In this document: piece after piece, positions 6,309-44,280 of the stretch
How positions within the stretch are numbered: the first letter of the stretch is position 1
Layout: each line of letters starts with the position of its first letter
Assembly (NCBI GenBank): GCA_020891255.1
Contig: BQFW01000007.1
Coordinates: 124,001-188,000 of the forward strand
Origin: Entomortierella parvispora E1425
Lineage: Eukaryota; Fungi; Mortierellomycota
Length of the DNA: 64,000 nt
Direction of reading: 5' to 3'
Position numbers and translations under genes: made by a program
Notes under the pieces: generated by a model
The model's database searches: none
What the model was told of the DNA's origin: nothing
The model's input: only the letters and a program-made list of their open reading frames with translations

Positions 6309-9300
6309 ACAACATTCTGGAAGATTTGTGGATGACTCTCAGATCGGAACACCGTCTCAAGGACGTTTGAGTCTAGATGGACCCGATACTCCTTCCGGTG
6401 TCTCTCGTCGCAGGACATTGGGAAAACCAGCAGGTTACTCCGCAAACGAGTCAGTGGAGCAACCTGTTCGTTCAACGCAGTCGATTGACGAAACCCGTCG
6501 ACCGACCTTGTCCGAGATGGCAGCTTCTCCTTTGCCCTCAGAATTTGACCAGCAACAGCAGCAAGCAGGCAATCGCCAACGCCACCCTTATAACAACAGT
6601 GCCTACCCAGGACTGGAAGAGCGCCCCTTGAACCGCTCCAGCAGCTCTAGCCAACAACAGCAACAGCAGCAGCAAGATGTGATTCGTCGTCGGTCGCTTT
6701 CTGAAAGCCGAAACCGGACCTCGTACAACGGTCCCGGCCGGGCGTCCATTGATCAACAACGACCCACCTCTCAGCAGTTCCAACAACAGAGCCAGGAGAC
6801 CTCAGCCGGATACGGTCAAGAAGGATCTCAGTACAGCTCCAAGGATGCCGAAATCAGGGATTTGCGTCAGCGTGAACAGTGGCTCCTGGCTGAAGTGGCC
6901 ATGTCTCGTAAGCGGAACGGTGAACGTCCCGTCTCAATGAGCAATTCTTCGACCAGTCAGATCCTCAGGGAGGAGATGCACGCGTTCGAGAACGATGCGG
7001 ACCCAAACTCTGAAAAGTATCGCATCATGCAAGTCTTGCTGGCCGTCAAGGCCGAGTTGGAAAAGTCAAAGACCTCGATCGTCACCCAGGCCCAGTTGGC
7101 GTCCAACAAACTCCGGGAGGCAGAGAGGGTCAGGACAGCGGCTCTTCAGGAGGCTGCCTACCTCAAGGCCAAGGTGTCAGCGCTGCAATCGGGCGAGACT
7201 CAACTCTTGAGCACCACAGAAACGGCAAGGGCAGTCGATCTCGAGAAGCGCTTGACGGTGGCTTTGAACCAGGTCGACAAGTTGCAATCTCAGCTGTCCC
7301 AGAACGAATCTATTCTGGAGCGTGAACGCAATGCGCGCGAGTCGGCTCAGAACCGGGAACAGCAGGCAGCGTCCCGCGCAGAGGAGGCTCAACTGTCTCA
7401 CTCGCGATCGCTGGCTGAGCTCACGGCTTTGCATGAGCGTGCTTCCCTGGCTGAAGCCAACTTGAGAGAATGTGAGGCCAAGAACGCGGCCTCGGAGGCC
7501 GGTTTGTCCAGTTATCAACAACAGTCCACGGCCTTGTTCTCTCAGATTTCGGCCCTCAAGACCACAGTCGATCATCAGAAGAAGTCACTGGAAAAGGCCA
7601 AGCTCGCCTACTCTGTGGCGAGCGAACGAGCCGAGCATGCTGACCGACTCTGGACGCAGACTCGACAGGAGATGGACACAACCCAACTCGAGATGGCGAC
7701 CGTGAAGGCTAACCTGGACCGGACGCAACGCGAGGCAGAGCACTGGAAGTCCAAGGCCCAGGAGACGGATCTGTTGTGGCAAAAGGCCAAGTCGGAGAAC
7801 GAGGCCATGCGCACGCTCTTGGAGGACGACATGAACGCCTCTTATTCACCTGGTACCAACAGTCGCAAGCACGACAGTATCATGGCCATCACTTCGGCTT
7901 CTCGCGTCGCAGAACTGGAGCATGAGCTTGGTACTTTGCGTCATTTGCTCCGCGAATCCCAGGCTGCGGCTGCACAGGCCAACAAGGATTTGGGCGAGAC
8001 GATGGTCCGGATCTCTCAATTGGAGCAGACCTCTATGGCCGCCCGCACCGAAGCTGCCACCGCTCAAAGACAGTGGACAGCTGCGGAGGACCGTGTTTCA
8101 TCCTTGGAGGCTCAGTTGAGCCGCAAGGACGAGGCCTTGGAGGATATGGCCAAGGAGCAAGAGAACAATGAGGTCCAGCTCGGTCTCTTGCGTGGCGTCA
8201 TGCGAGAAAATGGACTCTTGGCGGATGATTTGATCGTGGAGGCATTGACTCAAGGAGCAGATGGTACTGTTTCGGCAGCCAGCGCCAACTCTGGAGCCAC
8301 GACAATGACGAGTTTGAAGGCCAAGGTCCAAGAGGCCGAGAAACACGCACAAGAGGCTGAGGATCAATTGCAGGAATTGCAGGATTTGAAGCAGCACCAA
8401 GAGGACAGGATCCAACAATTGGAGGCTGACTACCAGACGGCTGTGCATTACGTCCAAGGGTCCGAGGGCATGCTTCAACGTTTGAGAGATGATGCCCAGG
8501 CGGCCATCCAGGAACGGGATACAGTCCAGGCTCGCTTTTTGGAGCTGGAATCTGCCCATGCGCTCTGCCAGGACCGCGAGCGATCGGCGGGCGAAACTGC
8601 GGCTGCCACAGCAACGGCGCAGTTGGAGGAAGAAGTGACGGATTTGCACCGTCAGTTGCACGATTCCATGGGACGGAGCATGGAATTGGAGCAGAAGCTG
8701 GAGGAGGTGAGCCGGGCCCTGGAGGAATCCGAGGCGTCTGCGGAATCGACCCTGGCCGAGTTCAAGACCTTGAAGGCCAAGCATCACGAGCACAAGAAGC
8801 AGGGTGTAGCCGCTCAGGAGAACTACCAGACGCAGTTGGAGCAGTTCGAGGCCGTGATGGGTGAAACTAAGGAGTCATTGGCAGAAAGCCGCAGGGCATT
8901 GGAGGCTAGCCAAGAGGAATTGGAAAAGTCTCGGGACTTGAACCAAAAGACGACACAGGAGCTGGAGAAGACTTTGGAGTTGGTCAAGGCGAAAGAGTTG
9001 GCCTTGGCCGAGGCGGCCGCTGCCGTGAAGGAGGCCGAGACCAGAGCTTTGAATGCAGAGGCTGCGGCGGCTGAGAGCCGCAAGGGCGATACAGCGCAGG
9101 AAGAGGAAGAGCAGGAACGTCGCCGTGCAGCCACCTTGGCAGCCCACCAGGAGGAATTGGAGCTCGTGATTGAGAATGCGCAAAAGACGATCAAATCCCT
9201 TCAAGCAGACAATGAGGATTTGAAGGAGCAACTGAACGCGTCCGAAAAGAAGATTTCAATCCTTTTGGATAACTTCCAGGGACCCGATTCGGTGCGGAAC

Positions 9301-37017: not shown

Positions 37018-38014
37018 GGACGTCCAAGTAATAATAATAAAAAAAAGAACTAGTGTGTGGAGTCTCAATTGGGGTCTGTGAAGCTCCGGTTCTTTATGTG
37101 GTTGATAGTTGTTGCGAAAACTAGGCCGTCGCTGCGCGATGGATGAACTTTTCGCCAGCTTGGCAAGGTCATCCCAGTGTCACCTCGACTGAACTCATCA
37201 CGTGAGGCCAGGGCCTGCGGTGGGTGTACTTATTTGCCCAGGATAATCTACAGTCACTGTTTTGAAAATATTGAGCACCTGTGAATCATTTCACAGCGTT
37301 GAGTGAATGCATCCTTTGTTGCACCCCGTTTGGTTTATCTGAGTGAAGGGGGGCCCCTTGTCAATATCCAGCTGGGAGCAACCCTCATACACGCCGGTGG
37401 TGCTGGCGCAGCGTATGTCTGCTGTGTTTTCTGTCTGGCCAACATGCCCTCAAAGAAAACGATACCTGGTTGTGGAAACGGGCCAGCGGGGTGTGGTCCA
37501 CTTTTACTGATGACTACGCGGATATCAACATCCATCATCATCCATCATCGTACCCCACCTTGGTTATTATTTTGCCTCTTTTTTTCCCTTTCTCATTCCT
37601 ACTCTCTCCTCGACGTGCACTCTTGACACACCCTTCCAACGCATCCCCATCCGCAACTATCCACGCTCCTTCTCCCAAGACTCTCCCCTCACGTATCTCC
37701 CTACCTACCTGCTATTCATCAAAGATATTGTCTTGACACCGTGCAAAGGTAGGCTTTACTCGCGCTGTTTGCCTGCTCCAATCCGGAGTGAGGGAGCAAT
37801 ACACTCACACGGTTTCTGTAATAGCACCTCTCTGCCATCTCTCTGCCTCCCCTCGGCCCTTTGAAAAAGTCTACTACAAGCTACCGCCCTCGTTTGCTGC
37901 CAACACCAGGTACGTAAAGCAAGTCCCTTTGAGGCGGCTCATATCAAGGGTGCAAGAATCTGATCAGAAAGGCTTTTTTTTTTTTTTTTAATACCACAGC
38001 GTCGCTCTTCTAAA

Positions 38015-41000
38015 ATGGGTGGCCCTGGCCTTTTGGCGGTCGTTGGTACAGCAAAGGAGCTCCCCAAAGTCGATCTGCCAGACTGCAAGATCCTCGTCGA
38101 TGTCGGTTCGTTTTACCCATTTCTCGTTCGCTCGGTCTACAACAGCAAGATGGGCAAGCCAGAAGAATTCGCCGCCATTTGGATCATGAACAAGTTCAAT
38201 GTTCCCAATGTCGAGTTCTTTATCGACGGCCATGGCAACAAAGAGAAGCATGCAACAAGCATGGCGCGACGTGACAACCAGGCCGATCTAGACAGTGCGG
38301 AATCCATTGTTAAAGAGATGGAGGATAGAGCTGCCGTCGGAAAGAGTACCAACAAGACCGACTACAGGACCTGCACAAAGCTATTAAGGTCTTGCACATC
38401 TCTCACCTACGACTTTAAGGACAAGCTTAGCAAGCAGATGGCATCACAATTAGCGGATCGTTTCATGAATGACTATCAGCTTGGACGGACTTTTGAACAA
38501 TCTCCGCGCCATGTGCAGGCGAGACGACGCATCGGACATGAGGTTAACGTTGGTTTAGAAACTCTGAACGATCACCAGCTGAAGCAGCATTTCGATACCG
38601 CCGCCCAGAAGTACGTCAAGCTGGTCGACGGTGAGGCCGACCTCGCAATTGTTCGTCGAGCCAAGGAGCTGGTTATCGCAAAGACAAAGTTTGTTGTAGT
38701 CGGCAATGACTGTGACTACGCCATCCATCCGTCGATTCCGATCCTTCTGCGGCCCTCTGGCAAGAAGTATATCCAGTACAATGTCGATGAACTTTTGGCA
38801 AAGTCGGAGCGGACACGGGCTCAGTTCACAGTGCTGGGCTGTGTGTCCAAAACGGACTATAATGCGAACCTTGCTGGGTTTGGTATTGTCACCAATTCGC
38901 GTATCATCAAGTCTTGCTCAAAAGGTAAGTAGCCAAGGCTATTTTTTTGTTCTACCAAACATCAAGCTAGAGATCACATCAAGCAAAATAACTAATCACT
39001 CTCCGTGCAACCTTCTGTTAGACATCATTGTGGACGGCATTCCTGTGAAGGACGCTGCGCTCAAGATCTTGGACAATTACTACGAACACAAGGATGTCAA
39101 GGAGGCCATTGAAAAAATCGATCCCTCGGATGTCGAGATGAAGGAAAACCAACGAGCGTCTTCCAAGAGGATATTCATCGATGGCGTAGAGACTCCACTC
39201 AGTGACGACGTAAAGCTCACAAGAGCAAACTTGGAGAATCAGACGCGAGATAAAGTCATCGACCTGAAGAAGCGCATGCTTGCGGCCGGCAAGATTCGCC
39301 GCCAGGTACTCAAAAACCGAAAGGAAAAGTCGACACAGCAGTAAGTCACCATGTCAGAACAAATACAGACCGAGCCACGATTGAAAACATCATCTTGCTG
39401 ACACTTCGTTTTACATTGACACCTTTGATCGCAAATAGAACAAGCGTAGAAAAGTACAAGAGAAAGAGGTACAACCGCTTCAAGACTGTTCAGTGCCCGC
39501 GCCTCGATGACCCGTCACACCCAGGTTATTCTCCCAGGCCGGATGACAGTGCGACACCCGATCCAGCACGTCAAGAGCGTCAAGCACGTCAACATCTCCA
39601 TCGCCAAAGTGTCAACGCACGCCGATTGATACGTGATGACAATATGGCCATTCGTGCTGGGCGCTGCAAGACCGAGTACAAGAGCAAAGGATTTCACAAG
39701 ATGCCTTCCAAACAGTTTGCCATCAAAGTTAACTGTGTCGGAGGCGCAGGCACGCAGGTCAATGCGACCTTGGGGGATCCGCCAAAGGATCTGGAATTCA
39801 AGCCATTCAAGCCATTCGATCCAGACTATGGCAAAAAAAACAAAGACCCAGAGAACCCCGAGGCAAGGACCAAGCCCGAGACCAAGCCCAAGCAGAGCCG
39901 AAAGAAGACGACAAGAAAGTCTGGGCAGACTCCAAAGGCTCCCAAGGCACCCAAGCCGGCCACTCCACCCAGCAACCGCGCCTTGAGAAAATCGTTCTTC
40001 CTCAAAAGTCTGACTGGTCGTCACGTATGTAAAACACTGAACATGGGCCAGCTGGGAAGCAATATTGACAAGGCGATCAGCGCATCGTGGTTGGCTGAGC
40101 ACTCAAACAAAACAAAGTACAACACCTTAAGGAAGTTGACCCAAAACGACGTCAGACTGGCAGTTGTCAAGACCATGCGGCGCATTGCAGGGTCGCCAAC
40201 GAGCTGTTGCGCCATGGGCAGGATGCCGTTGGGTTGTACATCACCGACACCAAGGATTTGCGGCCCTTGAAGGAAGCTTTGTTTCTGCCAAAGAAATTGA
40301 GGGACGCCGCTGAAGCTGCCAAAGCCGCGGCCAGTATTGCTCGCACTGCTGCCGAAGCTGATCCTACCAACACTGATGTCGCCACTGCTTTGGCAGCCGC
40401 CGACGCCGCCGCCGCTACTGCGATTGCCAATGCCGACGTCGATAGCATTATCAACAATGCAGGCAAGAAGAGACTGGCGAATATCGAAAAGAAAAAGGGC
40501 TCACGTCGTCGCAGGGGCAGCAAGACGAAAAGTGCTGACACTCCCGGGTCCGGTCCAACCGGTATGGACGTTGACGCACTTGCTGTTGGTCTTTCCGATA
40601 TGGATATTGACACGTCTAGCCTTGGCCCTATGGACATGGACATTGACTCGCCTGCTCCCGCTCCTGTCTCGAGTCCCAAGGAGGACATGGACTCTGATGA
40701 TGAGGTCAACGTGGATGATGAGGAGGATGAACTCGAGGAGGACGACGATGCACCTGACGAAGACAACACTGGGGACGGTGACGACGACGAGGGAGACACT
40801 GAGGATGAATCGGGAATGAAGGGGGACAATGGTGGCTTCATGTTGTCTCTGCTCAGGTATTTTCGACACCAATTTGAAATTGGTCAGGGAAACACCAACC
40901 GCCACCTCATTGAAGATATTCGCTCGTTATACTCCAAAGTTAATACCAACTTTGACGAGTCCACGCTCCTCGTCTTGACTGGGATTCAAGCTAAAGGGTC

Positions 41001-43983
41001 GAAAAATGTGTACCTGGAAGGCAGTATTGTGGCTCAACTGGGCATCCGTTTAGCATGTCAGTTGCGGAGGTATTTTATTGACCAGGCGGCCGGCATTGCG
41101 ACGAGTCTTCCTCAGTCCCCCATAAGGAACGGCCACATCAGGCTAAGCGAGCTGGACCTTTGGAACCATTTCCAGTATGTTTGGGATATATTCAACTTTA
41201 TCATGGTTATACGGAACGCCGAAAAGACCCTCCAAGGCCTTCCTGCATCCACCCAACAGAACTTCAAGCTAGAACTCAACGAATTACCTCCCGGTTGGCT
41301 CCTCATAAAGCTGGTGACACCCCTCGGCAAGGGAGACAAAGACAAGGTCACCACTGCCACGATCCAAGAGATGTCTGATCTGAAAGCATACCTGGTAAAT
41401 GATGCCTCGGACAAGAGTGTTAGCTCGAGCGAGTTCTTGATGGCACAGCGGAGGATACCAGATGCTACCAACCTGGTGCGCGGACAACCAAAAAACTTTT
41501 TGCCGTCGTATCTACACAGAGGATCGATCGTCACCAATGGGTCCCACGCCTACCTCTCAACTGTCGATCTCCGGATTCGGAAGCAACAACGATTTATCAC
41601 AGAGATATTCGAGGAGGGGGGAGGGTTCCGCAGGAGACATGTCCTCTCCCCTGATAATCGAAAGTTGCTACCAAACTTGTCAACAGCCGTCCCTAGCCAG
41701 GAATCACTGACGGCAATGTTTCCAGACACAACCAGGGTGGACATTGGCGCGATTGATCTTGGCAAGGAGTTTATGGTCGGATTTGCCTGCAAGCGCTATG
41801 ACAGCGATGACTTTATCTATACGATCAGCGCAAAGACAAGGGCAGTGTACCAACCGTCCAATCGACGTCGGAGCGAAGTCAACACATTGAAGAACAACAC
41901 CATCATTGACATCCCGGTTGGAGAGAGCGCCAAGTTGATCCCACCACGCAAGTTCACTCCAGGAATGACCACGACTGGTCAGGCCATAGCAATGTATGAA
42001 ACAAGGCTAGAGTCGATGGACAACAACCCAAAGGGACGGATCCAGGAAAAGTTGACCCCAGAGTACCATTTACTCTCTTCGTTCTACAACAAAGGCCATC
42101 GACATCAAAAGAGTGAGGCACAAACGAAGCGTGCGACAACGGCAGAGCTAGACATTCTGACCAACCATATCTTAACAGCCATGGGGACACACCTGCGCGT
42201 GCAAGAGGATGGTCAGCCCAGACCGAGGGGAGTAATTTCCATCGGGCAGGACGGGAAGCGTGGGTTCTCGTCAGTGTCAAAGGGCTACGAGATGTCCAAG
42301 CACAACACGTTTCTGGACCACTTTGTGCCTCGGGTAATTTTTTTTCTTTCACCTTTTTTTTTTTTTTTTTTTTTTTCGGATCTGTCAAGGTCCAGTCAAC
42401 AAGAACAAGAGACTAACAGTTGTTCCACGATTCATGTTTACAACCACTGCAACTAGGCCCGAAGACTTGGCTACATCATTGTTGGTTTGCCAGAGTATTA
42501 TACCTCCCGCCGTTGCCCAAAGTGTCAGAGCAGCGGCATCTCCGAGCAGGACTTTGTGGGCTATATAAGAATACGCCGTGCCCATTGTGTCCGCTGTGGG
42601 ACATGGTTCCACCGGGATCTGCTTGCTGCTTCCAACATGGTCGTGGCAACCAGGTACTACCTGGACCACCTCTCGCGCCCTGCCTACCTTTTGCCAATCA
42701 CAAAGGACGAGAAATTTGTCTTTGACCAAAGGTATGGACCCAACCTTCCACCGGGTGTGCCAGCCAACAAAATCATTCGCCGTGGTGAATCTGGTGATCA
42801 GCCAGACATTGCCAGTTCGAGCAGTTCAAGCGCACCACCACCACCTCCACCACCAGCGTCGCCGCCAGGTAAGGCAACTCTGCTGCTCGTGCTTTTATAG
42901 GTTTATAGGCCATGTGCTGCTGAATGTCCTCTTGACGTCCTCTTGACCACATTTCACATTGTATTTTCTCAGGCACTCTGCAGACACCAAAGTTGAGCCG
43001 AAAGGACGCCCAAAAGCAGAGGCAAGCACAGACTCTAGCCCAGCTTGGCTCAGGGTCAGCTGCAGGGTCAAGTTCTACGCAAGTGCAGGCAGAAGGCCCT
43101 CCACCAAAGAAGCGACGCACTCGTCCTGCTGCAAAGAGGACGGCACCGCAGACACTGGCACAGATACCGCAAGGATCATGGACAAGTTCAGCTCTGGGTT
43201 CGCAAACGCACAGTCAGGCTCAGGCCCAGACACAGGCCCAGGCGTCATGGACACCAGAGCAAAGGTCGTTTCTTTCACCCACTCAGTCATCACAAAGACA
43301 AAGCTATGCAGCCATTGCAGCAGTGGGAGTGGCACAGGCACAGGCACGGCAAGGACCAGCATCGGCGTCAAGTTCGCAAGCTCGTCCACGGATGCAACCC
43401 CAAACACGACAGCAGACACAGAGTCAGCCACAGACCGGGGCACAGAGACCACCCATGCGGTTGTGGTCCTACGCAGAGTCAGTGCGAGGAAGGCAGGCCG
43501 AAGCAGGATCATCCACAGGAGGTGAGTGAATCGCCCAATTGCTCCACAATTATATCCATTCGTTATCTAACACAGGCGCCGACCATTTCTTTGACTGTCC
43601 ATCGCAACAGGTCCCATTCGCCGTGGCCAGTCCATTCACCCGCAAGCAGGGCAGCAAACAGGCAAGTCCATGGGAGCGTTCAAAAAGCGAGACCACTTTC
43701 TAACATGGATGTATATTCATCCTTTCTTGTAGGCTTGGCCTACTTGGCATCGCCCTCTACCCCATCGCCGGCCGCTACATCAACCTCAGCCTCAGCGTCA
43801 TCTTCTTCTGCACCCAGGCGACAGCAGCAGCAGCAGCAAGGTAAATACAGCAACCGCCTCGAGTCATCCAACGCACTTGAGACTCACTATCACCATGGTT
43901 GACTACTTTTCGCAATCATCACAATAGATCCAACAGCAGGATCAGCATCTTCATCCCTCAGCGATACTAACAGACTCGCGTAA
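38015..43983 (+). CDS. FEN1/XPG-like 5' nuclease fused to a Fanzor (eukaryotic TnpB-like) RuvC-zinc finger nuclease; about 1,766 aa, 8 exons, one 1-bp frameshift at 40190-40192
   Basis: Exons 38015-38924, 39022-39340, 39439-42333, 42457-42868, 42973-43521, 43611-43661, 43733-43840 and 43928-43983 join in frame if one base is restored in the G-run at 40190. FEN-like motifs: MGGPGL, LVDVGS, FIDG..K..R, GEADL, GNDCDY, TDYNANLAGFG. Fanzor motifs: GAIDLG, ISIG, ARRLGYIIVGLPEYYTSRRCPKC..CVRC..HRDLLAASNM. Confidence 0.88.
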
Positions 43984-44210
43984 TCTACCTTATAGTAGAA
44001 TTGGGTAAGAAAAAGTTCTTGTTCAAAAGGCAAAGGCAAGCGACATGCTACAAGCGACATGCTTCAAGTCTTTCTAACACGTTGATCACCTCTCTTTTCG
44101 TCTCTACAGGTTTTGCTCCGGGTAGGTCGCTATTTTTTTTTTTTTTTTGATTTTTGTGAATCGTCGTGAAAACTAATCTAAGCCACCCTTGACCAATAGC
44201 GAAGCCCGCC

Positions 44211-44280
44211 TGCGGTCTGCGCAAGCCTTTTTTGTTCGAGCACCGACCACTCCAAGAGCGGCGTCTGCGCTGGGACCGCA
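44211..44280 (+). ncRNA. Candidate omegaRNA scaffold hairpin downstream of the Fanzor ORF
   Basis: tgcggtc (44211-17) pairs with gaccgca (44274-80), gcgca with tgcgc, gcc with ggc, and tttttg with caagag. Its position about 230 nt after the stop fits Fanzor loci. No expression evidence. Confidence 0.35.

Follow-up and report, generated by a model that had tools for sequence, protein, structure and literature searches.

A Mutator-like element of Entomortierella parvispora carries a gene joining a predicted FEN/XPG-type nuclease to a Fanzor-type protein

Fanzors, eukaryotic relatives of TnpB, are thought to aid the persistence of transposons, in that they cut sites free of the element and repair then copies the element back, a process with which eukaryotic end joining competes strongly. 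The two groups share the signature D-X(125,275)-[TS][TS]-X-X-C4-X(5,50)-RD (PMC3627910), while an "alternative glutamate" in place of the canonical one of RuvC-II (PMC10711439, PMC10530073) and, according to Yoon et al., DPG at RuvC-I (PMC10711439) are signatures of Fanzors. Characterised Fanzor1 proteins (SpuFz1, GtFz1, PpFz1; PMC10432273, PMC11423790, PMC10711439) comprise from a few hundred to approximately 1,000 residues, and the sole accessory domain of Fanzors that we came across in the literature is the FRI cyclophilin-binding insertion of PpFz1 (PMC11423790). In Rhizopus, Phycomyces and Mucor, Fanzor1 is carried by transposase-less elements of the MuDR type with terminal inverted repeats (TIRs) and 9-bp target site duplications (TSDs) (PMC3627910). 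Here we describe a related, but considerably larger, gene found in a 64,000-nt stretch of the genome of Entomortierella parvispora E1425 (assembly GCA_020891255.1; hereafter the window, to which all positions refer unless a locus is named). The gene (38015-43983, plus strand) joins a predicted FEN/XPG-type nuclease to a Fanzor-type protein, and it is the only gene of a mobile element of about 7.0 kb.

The gene reads as a chain of long open reading frames (ORFs) separated by short gaps with canonical GT..AG ends. Exons were placed by hand, with splice sites at 38924/39022, 39340/39439, 42333/42457 and 42868/42973, and these agree with the borders observed in the spliced contigs of sequencing run X3 (see below); splicing of the last small exons of the tail was taken solely from the public gene model of a paralogue. 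The best matches of the product are two annotated proteins of the same assembly, EMPS_10280 (P0014, 1,701 aa; locus L001) and EMPS_11535 (P0151, 1,765 aa; locus L002). The latter is intact, and its length fits the estimate of about 1,766 aa put forward in the initial annotation of the window. That annotation had proposed a single gene in which a complete FEN/XPG-type nuclease precedes a Fanzor whose RuvC site (D / alternative-E / D) is intact, a proposal that the analyses below bear out; its motif coordinates (41755, 42493, 42616 and the FEN motifs of exon 1) all proved right against the sequence.

Direct family scans of the N-terminus (exon 1, 303 residues) with Pfam and NCBIfam gave no match, the gathering scores of XPG_N and XPG_I not being reached, and it took a profile of the family together with a structure model to identify it. 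The ESM features of the exon 1 product pointed to clusters of Pox_G5, XPG_I and 5'-3' exonucleases. An exhaustive phmmer search retrieved 142 relatives of the domain, some of the distant ones passing the Pfam models XPG_I (P0053 with 30.2 bits and P0027 with 26.2 bits) or XPG_I_2 (P0050). A profile built from 66 sequences of this family matched EXO1 (E 3e-10), Rad2 (1e-9), FEN1 (5e-9) and also XPG, with an alignment extending from residue 1 to approximately residue 264. Near-invariant columns of the 66-sequence alignment are D71, G72, K78, R85, E207, A208, D209, D232, D234, D281 and Y282. Seven acidic residues (D29, D71, E207, D209, D232, D234 and D281) show little or no variation among the 66 relatives and in the distant fusion clade; they correspond to D34, D86, E158, E160, D179, D181 and D233 of human FEN1, and align to EXO1 in the profile match. 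In addition, the spacing of K78 and R85 after D71-G72 (7+7) is identical to that of the gateway/arch pair of FEN1 (D86/K93/R100).

The AlphaFold2 model of residues 1-410 is of high confidence (pLDDT 92.7, pTM 0.90), also over the junction between exons 1 and 2, and together with the Foldseek comparison it places a PIN-like alpha/beta core with a helical arch and an H3TH region in this segment. Against the PDB, the top 34 Foldseek matches are all chains of FEN1, EXO1, XPG or Rad2 (the top 33 at E <= 0.001), the best being FEN1 and EXO1 (E 2.5e-6, probability 1.00, TM 0.5-0.6), and all 30 matches listed in the search of Swiss-Prot models are FEN1. The PIN/FEN fold expected for the N-terminus was in this way borne out, and we consider residues 1-410 to be a complete predicted 5' nuclease module of the FEN1/EXO1/XPG superfamily, with a full active site and a highly divergent sequence. 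With FEN1/EXO1/XPG(Rad2)/GEN1, its best matches by sequence profile and by fold, the module has in common the N and I regions, the seven metal-binding carboxylates, the K93/R100-like pair, the helical arch, the H3TH region and the PIN-like core. In contrast, its identity to these enzymes is approximately 13-17%, the window protein stays under the Pfam thresholds mentioned above, its clade has an insert of some 55 residues in the arch region, and a PCNA-binding tail is not evident. A further difference is that the module forms one protein with a TnpB-type nuclease and is borne by a transposon.

With regard to the C-terminal half, exon 4 matches Pfam PF07282 (Cas12f1-like_TNB; E 5.3e-10, 39.7 bits against a cut-off of 26.3), as do paralogues (49.6 and 44.8 bits), with E 4.5e-13 in P0108, a divergent paralogue of the same genome. 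NCBIfam guided_TnpB aligns to the same stretch with 22.9 bits, far under its cut-off of 100. The Bao-Jurka motif is found in P0151 as D1183-X208-T1391-S1392-XX-C4-X5-R1427-D1428, where D1183 belongs to AIDLG, G1345 occupies the site of the TnpB RuvC-II glutamate, E1388 lies in PEYYTS and the zinc finger reads CPKC...CVRC. The alternative glutamate E1388 is located 43 residues past the glycine and, by motif alignment alone, is kept in the relatives as (N/P)EY(Y/F)TS. The ESM features of residues 1090-1480 scored 0.97 against eukaryotic and giant-virus clusters carrying TNB and DUF8286 domains, while those of linker residues 410-700 were uninformative (scores <=0.65). Word-based homologue searches with the Fanzor core gave three relatives only, and PDB sequence searches with the core, by profile and by single sequence, gave no Fanzor or TnpB above noise (GtFz1 at E 1.2). 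It is on the TNB match, the order of the motifs and the ESM features, rather than on a fold, that the assignment of the C-terminal half to the Fanzor-type relatives of TnpB is based. This half has the three RuvC residues (D, alternative E and D), the zinc ribbon of TNB and, in its tail, a motif resembling a nuclear localization signal (NLS). PF07282 and the Bao-Jurka motif likewise agree with the Fanzor RuvC that had been read from IDLG, ISIG, PEYYTS, a C4 finger and HRD. The matches of the family profile, of the N-terminal model and of PF07282 go far beyond chance. With Fanzor1 the gene shares the zinc ribbon and the RuvC D...E...D with its glutamate relocated to (N/P)EYYTS, and also introns, the NLS-like tail and carriage on a eukaryotic DNA transposon with TIRs and TSD. 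The window protein family differs from Fanzor1 in its size (about 1,765 aa), in the complete second nuclease (FEN/XPG type) added N-terminally and in having DLG, not DPG, at RuvC-I, and its sequence similarity to the characterised Fanzors is restricted to the TNB region.

The fusion is not confined to E. parvispora. It is found in at least ten genera of Mortierellaceae with both active sites conserved. Collinear proteins or loci with FEN, linker and Fanzor parts are present in M. alpina (locus L003, where tblastn covers aa 7-1477), Podila, Linnemannia, Dissophora, Actinomortierella and M. antarctica, and partial models exist in Haplosporangium, Modicella, Benniella, Lunasporangiospora and E. 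chlamydospora; a fusion conserved among homologues, which the initial annotation had asked of a survey, is thus present in many genera and in collinear order. All matches of at least 950 residues with the FEN domain also align to the Fanzor core, with the exception of P0043 (988 aa; FEN region alone). The TNB domain is carried, according to Pfam, by P0108, P0120 and P0127, and in P0127 it occurs together with XPG_I, the latter just under threshold. In the wider set, at 20-35% identity, the catalytic residues of the FEN and Fanzor parts are likewise retained. Moreover, the pairwise identities of the FEN and Fanzor parts co-vary (Spearman 0.89, over 28 non-independent pairs), which fits one old fusion diverging as a unit. 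The named relatives all belong to Mortierellaceae, and a scan of giant-virus and phage contigs with the FEN profile found no relatives. The phylogenetic spread of these sequences and their co-divergence point to a fusion that is ancestral to the family spread through Mortierellaceae. We found no paper describing a FEN-Fanzor fusion, and the main Fanzor papers mention none; literature searches for Fanzor with flap endonuclease, FEN1, XPG, Mortierella or Mucoromycota gave nothing, or only reviews of engineered tools. It is a conserved natural design with two nucleases for which we found no published description.

Evidence of transcription comes from run X3, which shares its sample with the DNA run X2. 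No run labelled RNA contains the sequence, the search of RNA runs having given just an unrelated marine metagenome. Aligned to window positions 37150-43149, the X3 contigs skip four GT..AG introns, and none of these joints occurs in the high-depth run X2; the loose ends of the contigs are Illumina adapter sequence. X3 therefore behaves like cDNA or RNA-seq. One contig of 727 nt is composed of 38792-38922, 39020-39340 and 39439-39689, with GT..AG borders equal to those of predicted introns 1 and 2, another lacks intron 4 (joint 42865/42970), and further contigs end and begin at the borders of intron 3. An additional intron in the 5' untranslated region (UTR) places the start of transcription inside the element. 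At 95-99% identity to the window, the X3 contigs derive from paralogues, and they contain the base that is absent from the window at 40189; no single molecule among them spans the whole mRNA. We conclude that the family is transcribed; the contig joining exons 1, 2 and 3 reveals in-frame splicing of the FEN exon to the exon of 2.9 kb for the linker and the Fanzor core.

The copy in the window is itself interrupted. In a three-way alignment with L001 and L002, one base is missing from its exon 3 and the frame slips after 40189 (RRIA-G / VANELL). The contigs of run X2 occur both with and without this base (672 of 1,305 summed depth), and thus the 1-nt deletion after 40189 is probably real. The frameshift suspected at 40190 by the initial annotation consequently stands for this copy, from which the full protein cannot be made, but it is not fixed, given that an intact paralogue exists. 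The indels of L002 are in-frame or intronic only, and its exon 3 is an unbroken ORF of 1,004 codons. L001 contains three 1-nt insertions, masked in the gene model by spurious introns, and hence the 1,701-aa P0014 is partly wrong. The EMPS_10280 model (L001 10001-15983) is out of frame over the stretch matching window positions ~41225-41650. Between copies, the ratio of nonsynonymous to synonymous divergence (dN/dS) amounts to 0.15-0.20 overall, with 0.08-0.36 for the FEN exon and 0.12-0.29 for the linker, indicating that most of the divergence accumulated while the protein was under selection; judging from these ratios, both domains are under purifying selection. The copy in the window is a pseudogene of recent origin, in a family that is active and expressed and has intact sister copies. 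The three findings named beforehand as speaking against the fusion, namely separate transcripts, the lack of a PIN/FEN fold, and homologues without the fusion combined with a fixed frameshift, were in sum all resolved in its favour.

What the initial annotation had missed is that the gene is neither unique nor domesticated. It is the sole cargo of a Mutator-like transposon that is present in several copies, has TIRs and a 9-bp TSD, and keeps to a strict target motif. The similarity of L001 and L002 to the window is limited to 37222-44207/9, their flanks and flanking genes being unrelated. The paralogous insertions have 9-bp duplications of their own (AAAATGTAA in L002, GGAGCTGCA/GCAGCTGCA in L001 and GATTGGAAA in L005), so that TSDs of 9 bp are seen at four insertions, three of them perfect and one with a single mismatch. 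L005 is a second FEN-Fanzor element of the same genome. Its protein, P0108, is some 20-30% identical to the window protein, and its 9-bp TSD (GATTGGAAA) is perfect. Over the first 42 nt of the left end, the two elements show 90% identity. The TIRs are short and imperfect in both elements (13/21 in the window element, 16/21 in L005). The FEN-Fanzor gene is the sole gene in these elements, which encode no transposase. Because of its TIRs and 9-bp TSD, the element looks like a transposase-less, non-autonomous, Mutator-like DNA transposon of about 7.0 kb. With the Fanzor1 MuDR-type elements of Mucoromycota (ROr-4, PBl-3, MCi-4; PMC3627910) it shares a host among early-diverging fungi, MuDR-like TIRs, 9-bp TSDs and the lack of a transposase gene; neither a FEN domain nor a fixed target motif is reported in the description of those elements given by that paper.

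No second TIR copy was found within the window, no shared TIR was found adjoining the family members in L003, L004, L006, L008 and L009, and metagenome contigs, scanned for exact matches to the left end, yielded no further copy. In A. ambigua, ORF fragments of MULE (20.7 bits) and SWIM (18.8 bits), both under cut-off, lie at L007 4184-7747 (minus strand), head-to-head with a family member. These ORFs, opposite the Actinomortierella FEN-Fanzor gene, are broken or intron-split, and no common TIR enclosing the MULE fragments and the gene was found. Such an arrangement may represent an autonomous form of the carrier transposon. We also observed a subterminal motif, TGTGAATC(A/G)T (GATTTTTGTGAATCGT in two places), which occurs in the same orientation at 37284-37293 and 44155-44164, and also near the left end of L005 (7165-7180); it may be a candidate protein-binding site.

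Insertion follows a fixed rule, CACGTGA-N7-[TSD 9]-left end, in which the left end is always nearest the motif and the right flank is without it. The motif reads CACGTGA in the window, in L001 and in L002, and CACGTGT in L005, always at one and the same offset, and at least five further distinct left flanks in runs X2 and X4 have CACGTGA at this distance as well. Since CACGTGA occurs just 6 times, on both strands, in the 64-kb window, the target rule is strict and oriented. No CACGTG-N17 was found adjoining the family members in L003, L004, L006, L008 and L009. A TnpB guide is 16 nt long, and the cuts of TnpB-type enzymes fall approximately this far from the target-adjacent motif (TAM). We rejected CACGTGA as a conventional TAM, as a guide copied from the right-flank TSD would start 7 nt off the motif and the intervening 7 nt are not conserved; models with an antisense guide from the left end were rejected likewise, as they leave CACGTGA on the wrong side. 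A transposase reading TCACGTGA, or a tethering host factor of the bHLH (basic helix-loop-helix)/Cbf1 type that reads it, would be the simpler explanation of the rule. Alternatively, the FEN-Fanzor protein might itself pick or make the insertion site, CACGTGA serving as a TAM-like motif, with entry at a TnpB-type cut 16-17 nt away and a 9-nt stagger with 5' overhangs produced by RuvC and FEN. It would then be a eukaryotic insertion system that is coupled to a nuclease and directed by a motif, with a logic like that of Tn7 and CRISPR-associated transposons (Tn7/CAST), and not a passive passenger of the transposase of Mutator-like elements (MULEs), a scenario that we consider very improbable. In either case, the CACGTGA-N16 rule represents unusually precise targeting for a Mutator-like element, and provides a concrete candidate motif for TAM and target screens.

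One would expect an omegaRNA scaffold at the right end of the element, in the region that includes the right TIR. The last 217 nt of this region show 1-2 differences between copies, to be compared with a synonymous divergence (dS) of 0.02-0.04. The window copy is without 24 nt at ~44147 that both paralogues have, after a poly-T tract and some 60 nt from the right end; no other non-coding part of the element is otherwise as well conserved as the one that holds this gap. A hairpin at 44211-44280 was rejected as the scaffold, for it lies outside the element and is absent from the paralogues. Fungal intron signals are also visible in the 3' UTR, at 44005-44109 (GTAAGA...CTAAC...CAG) and 44123-44182 (GTAGGT...CTAAT...AG); splicing there would remodel any RNA of the right end. 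The coordinates of all features are collected in table 1.

Table 1. Features of the FEN-Fanzor gene and of the mobile element that carries it (window coordinates unless a locus is given)
Feature	Position	Strand	Remarks
CACGTGA target motif	37199..37205	+	Ends exactly 16 nt before element left end
Target rule sites	Window 37199-37221; L001 ~9168-9190; L002 ~9181-9203; L005 7069-7091		
Left TSD copy GCCTGCGGT	37213..37221	.	9 bp
Mobile element	37222..44207	+	6,986 bp; 97% identical to L001 9191-16233 and L002 9204-16204
Left TIR GGGTGTACTTATTTGCCCAGG	37222..37242	+	13/21 bases complementary to right end
Element terminus			GGGTGTACTTATTTG
5' UTR intron	37747..37822	+	X3 contig joint 37746/37823, GT..AG
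Start codon ATG	38015	+	
Exon 1	38015..38924	+	FEN/XPG N and I regions with catalytic D29, D71, K78, R85, E207, D209, D232, D234, D281
FEN codons in exon 1	D29 38099, D71 38225, E207 38633, D232 38708, D281 38855	+	Also K78, R85, D209, D234
Exon 2	39022..39340	+	Helices C-terminal to H3TH region, completing the FEN module; model residues 304-409, pLDDT >95 (AlphaFold)
Exon 3	39439..42333	+	Linker, acidic low-complexity insert, Fanzor N-terminal/REC region, RuvC-I D 41755, G at canonical RuvC-II site
RuvC-I D in AIDLG	41755	+	
G at canonical RuvC-II glutamate position (ISIG)	Exon 3	+	
Exon 4	42457..42868	+	Alternative RuvC glutamate PEYYTS 42493, C4 TNB zinc ribbon, RuvC-III D (HRD) 42616
E in PEYYTS	42493	+	
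CPKC...CVRC zinc finger	Exon 4	+	
D in HRD	42616	+	
Tail, exon 5 onward	42973..43983	+	Low-complexity Q/S/A-rich C-terminus, NLS-like PPKKRRTRPAAKR, several small exons
Stop codon TAA	43981-43983	+	
3' UTR and right end incl. right TIR	43984..44207	+	Expected place of omegaRNA scaffold
Right TIR	44187-44207	+	Element ends ...CCAATAGCGAAGCCC
Right TSD copy GCCTGCGGT	44208..44216	.	9 bp

These observations lead us to propose the following scenario. Like other OMEGA/Fanzor systems, the Fanzor part is probably guided by an RNA of the right end to target sites without the element, and cuts them. At the break, the FEN/EXO1-like domain tethered to it would probably trim 5' flaps or resect 5' strands. 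Such 5' processing would bind repair to copying the element by homology (retention/homing) rather than to joining the ends. Transposition would probably take place in trans, through a MULE transposase recognising the shared TIRs. T5 exonuclease is a FEN-family 5' nuclease. Its engineered fusions to Cas12f (exoCasMINI; PMC12337685) and to FnCas12a (TEXT; bioRxiv 10.1101/2020.07.07.191130) increase editing efficiency, which makes a mechanism of cutting plus FEN processing, such as the initial annotation had suggested with RNA-guided cleavage coupled to 5' resection for homing, plausible; as in the FEN-Fanzor, a FEN-family 5' nuclease is there tethered to a RuvC nuclease of the TnpB lineage in one polypeptide. 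However, those fusions are laboratory constructs, whereas the FEN-Fanzor is natural, ancient, under selection and located on a selfish element. Taken as a whole, a transposon-borne FEN-Fanzor fusion with a cut-and-resect mechanism is the best explanation at hand, and we judge the odds for and against it to be even. Our confidence in its architectural part is high, i.e., in the Mutator-like element of ~7.0 kb with its FEN-Fanzor gene, the frameshifted window copy, the intact and expressed sisters and the ancestral fusion under selection. The mechanism (cutting by the Fanzor, 5' processing by the FEN domain, transposition in trans) is put forward tentatively, with a likelihood somewhat short of even.

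Several observations weigh against this scenario. The folding energy of 43984-44220 is no better than that of shuffled sequences (z = +0.78), and Rfam gave no more than chance-level matches for the right end, where an omegaRNA was not found. The sole conserved motif of the flanks, CACGTGA, is 7 nt from the place where a TAM would be expected for a guide starting in the TSD. Outside TNB, the Fanzor core is without a Pfam or PDB sequence match, its AlphaFold prediction, made with the 8 sequences available, reached a pLDDT of 33, and RuvC-I of the window clade reads IDLG, not DPG, IDPG being found in the P0108 clade and LDLG or LDMG in others. Finally, the window copy is frameshifted, one transcribed copy (X3) has a further 1-nt deletion at 38549, and the transcript evidence consists of short-read contigs of paralogues from a run whose type is a guess ("DNA?").

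The contribution of the FEN domain could also be envisaged differently. Within the R-loop, it might cut the displaced non-target strand, as XPG does on bubbles and FEN1 on flaps, while RuvC cuts the target strand, the double-strand break being shared between the two. The retention of the helical-arch residues K78 and R85 and of the H3TH region agrees with such a role, as do the presence of XPG/Rad2 among the best profile matches and the 9-nt stagger of the TSD with 5' overhangs, which is the polarity of Cas12/TnpB cuts. Nevertheless, characterised TnpB and Fanzor proteins cut both strands by RuvC alone, and the RuvC triad is intact here; moreover, the long and partly disordered linker (~180-450 residues) better fits a tethered accessory than a fixed second active site, and we regard a shared break as unlikely. 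The same grade applies to a service of the FEN domain in transposition itself, where its task would be to clear away 5' flaps or to process the gapped intermediates of strand transfer that the MULE transposase leaves, either at the integration site with its 9-nt stagger or at the site of excision. The gene is always found in MULE-like elements with 9-bp TSDs, MULE and SWIM fragments adjoin one member, and host FEN1 repairs the integration intermediates of other elements. Yet most MULEs do without a FEN of their own, the non-autonomous copies keep the FEN under selection although they have no transposase, and the covalent fusion together with the co-divergence with Fanzor argues for joint action. 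A role in RNA processing, in which the FEN-like domain would excise the guide RNA from the spliced, polyadenylated transcript of host type (a task of RuvC in bacterial TnpB), seems to us improbable. PIN/FEN-like folds do include 5'-3' RNases, Xrn2 appearing at rank 35 of the fold search, and the UTR introns and the long 3' tail between TNB and the right end complicate the release of an omegaRNA; however, the closest matches in sequence and fold are DNA flap nucleases and exonucleases, not RNases, and the DNA-binding H3TH region is kept.

Two further explanations deny the fusion protein any function or its very existence. The family could be decaying in the genome, leaving a dead relic, given the frameshift in the window, the three 1-nt insertions of L001 and the further deletion in one transcribed copy. 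This is hard to reconcile with an intact L002, a dN/dS of ~0.2 between copies, a family that is transcribed and spliced, at least 8 insertion sites with intact TSDs and the conservation of both active sites across genera, and is in our opinion very improbable. That the fusion is an artefact of the gene model, with FEN-like and Fanzor genes being mere neighbours in the element and encoding separate proteins, we consider barely credible. Two introns do separate the parts, and no sequenced molecule spans the whole mRNA, but one spliced contig joins exons 1, 2 and 3 in frame, exon 3 is without a conserved start codon, the linker is under selection and the order is collinear in many genera.

In the context of the scenario that we favour, a transposon-borne FEN-Fanzor that cuts and resects, the presence across a fungal family of a Fanzor lineage with its own FEN/EXO1-type nuclease, both active sites being selected, suggests a built-in steering of repair. 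The FEN-Fanzor of Mortierellaceae is a natural, co-evolved counterpart of the T5-exonuclease-Cas12 fusions that have been built for higher editing efficiency and larger deletions.

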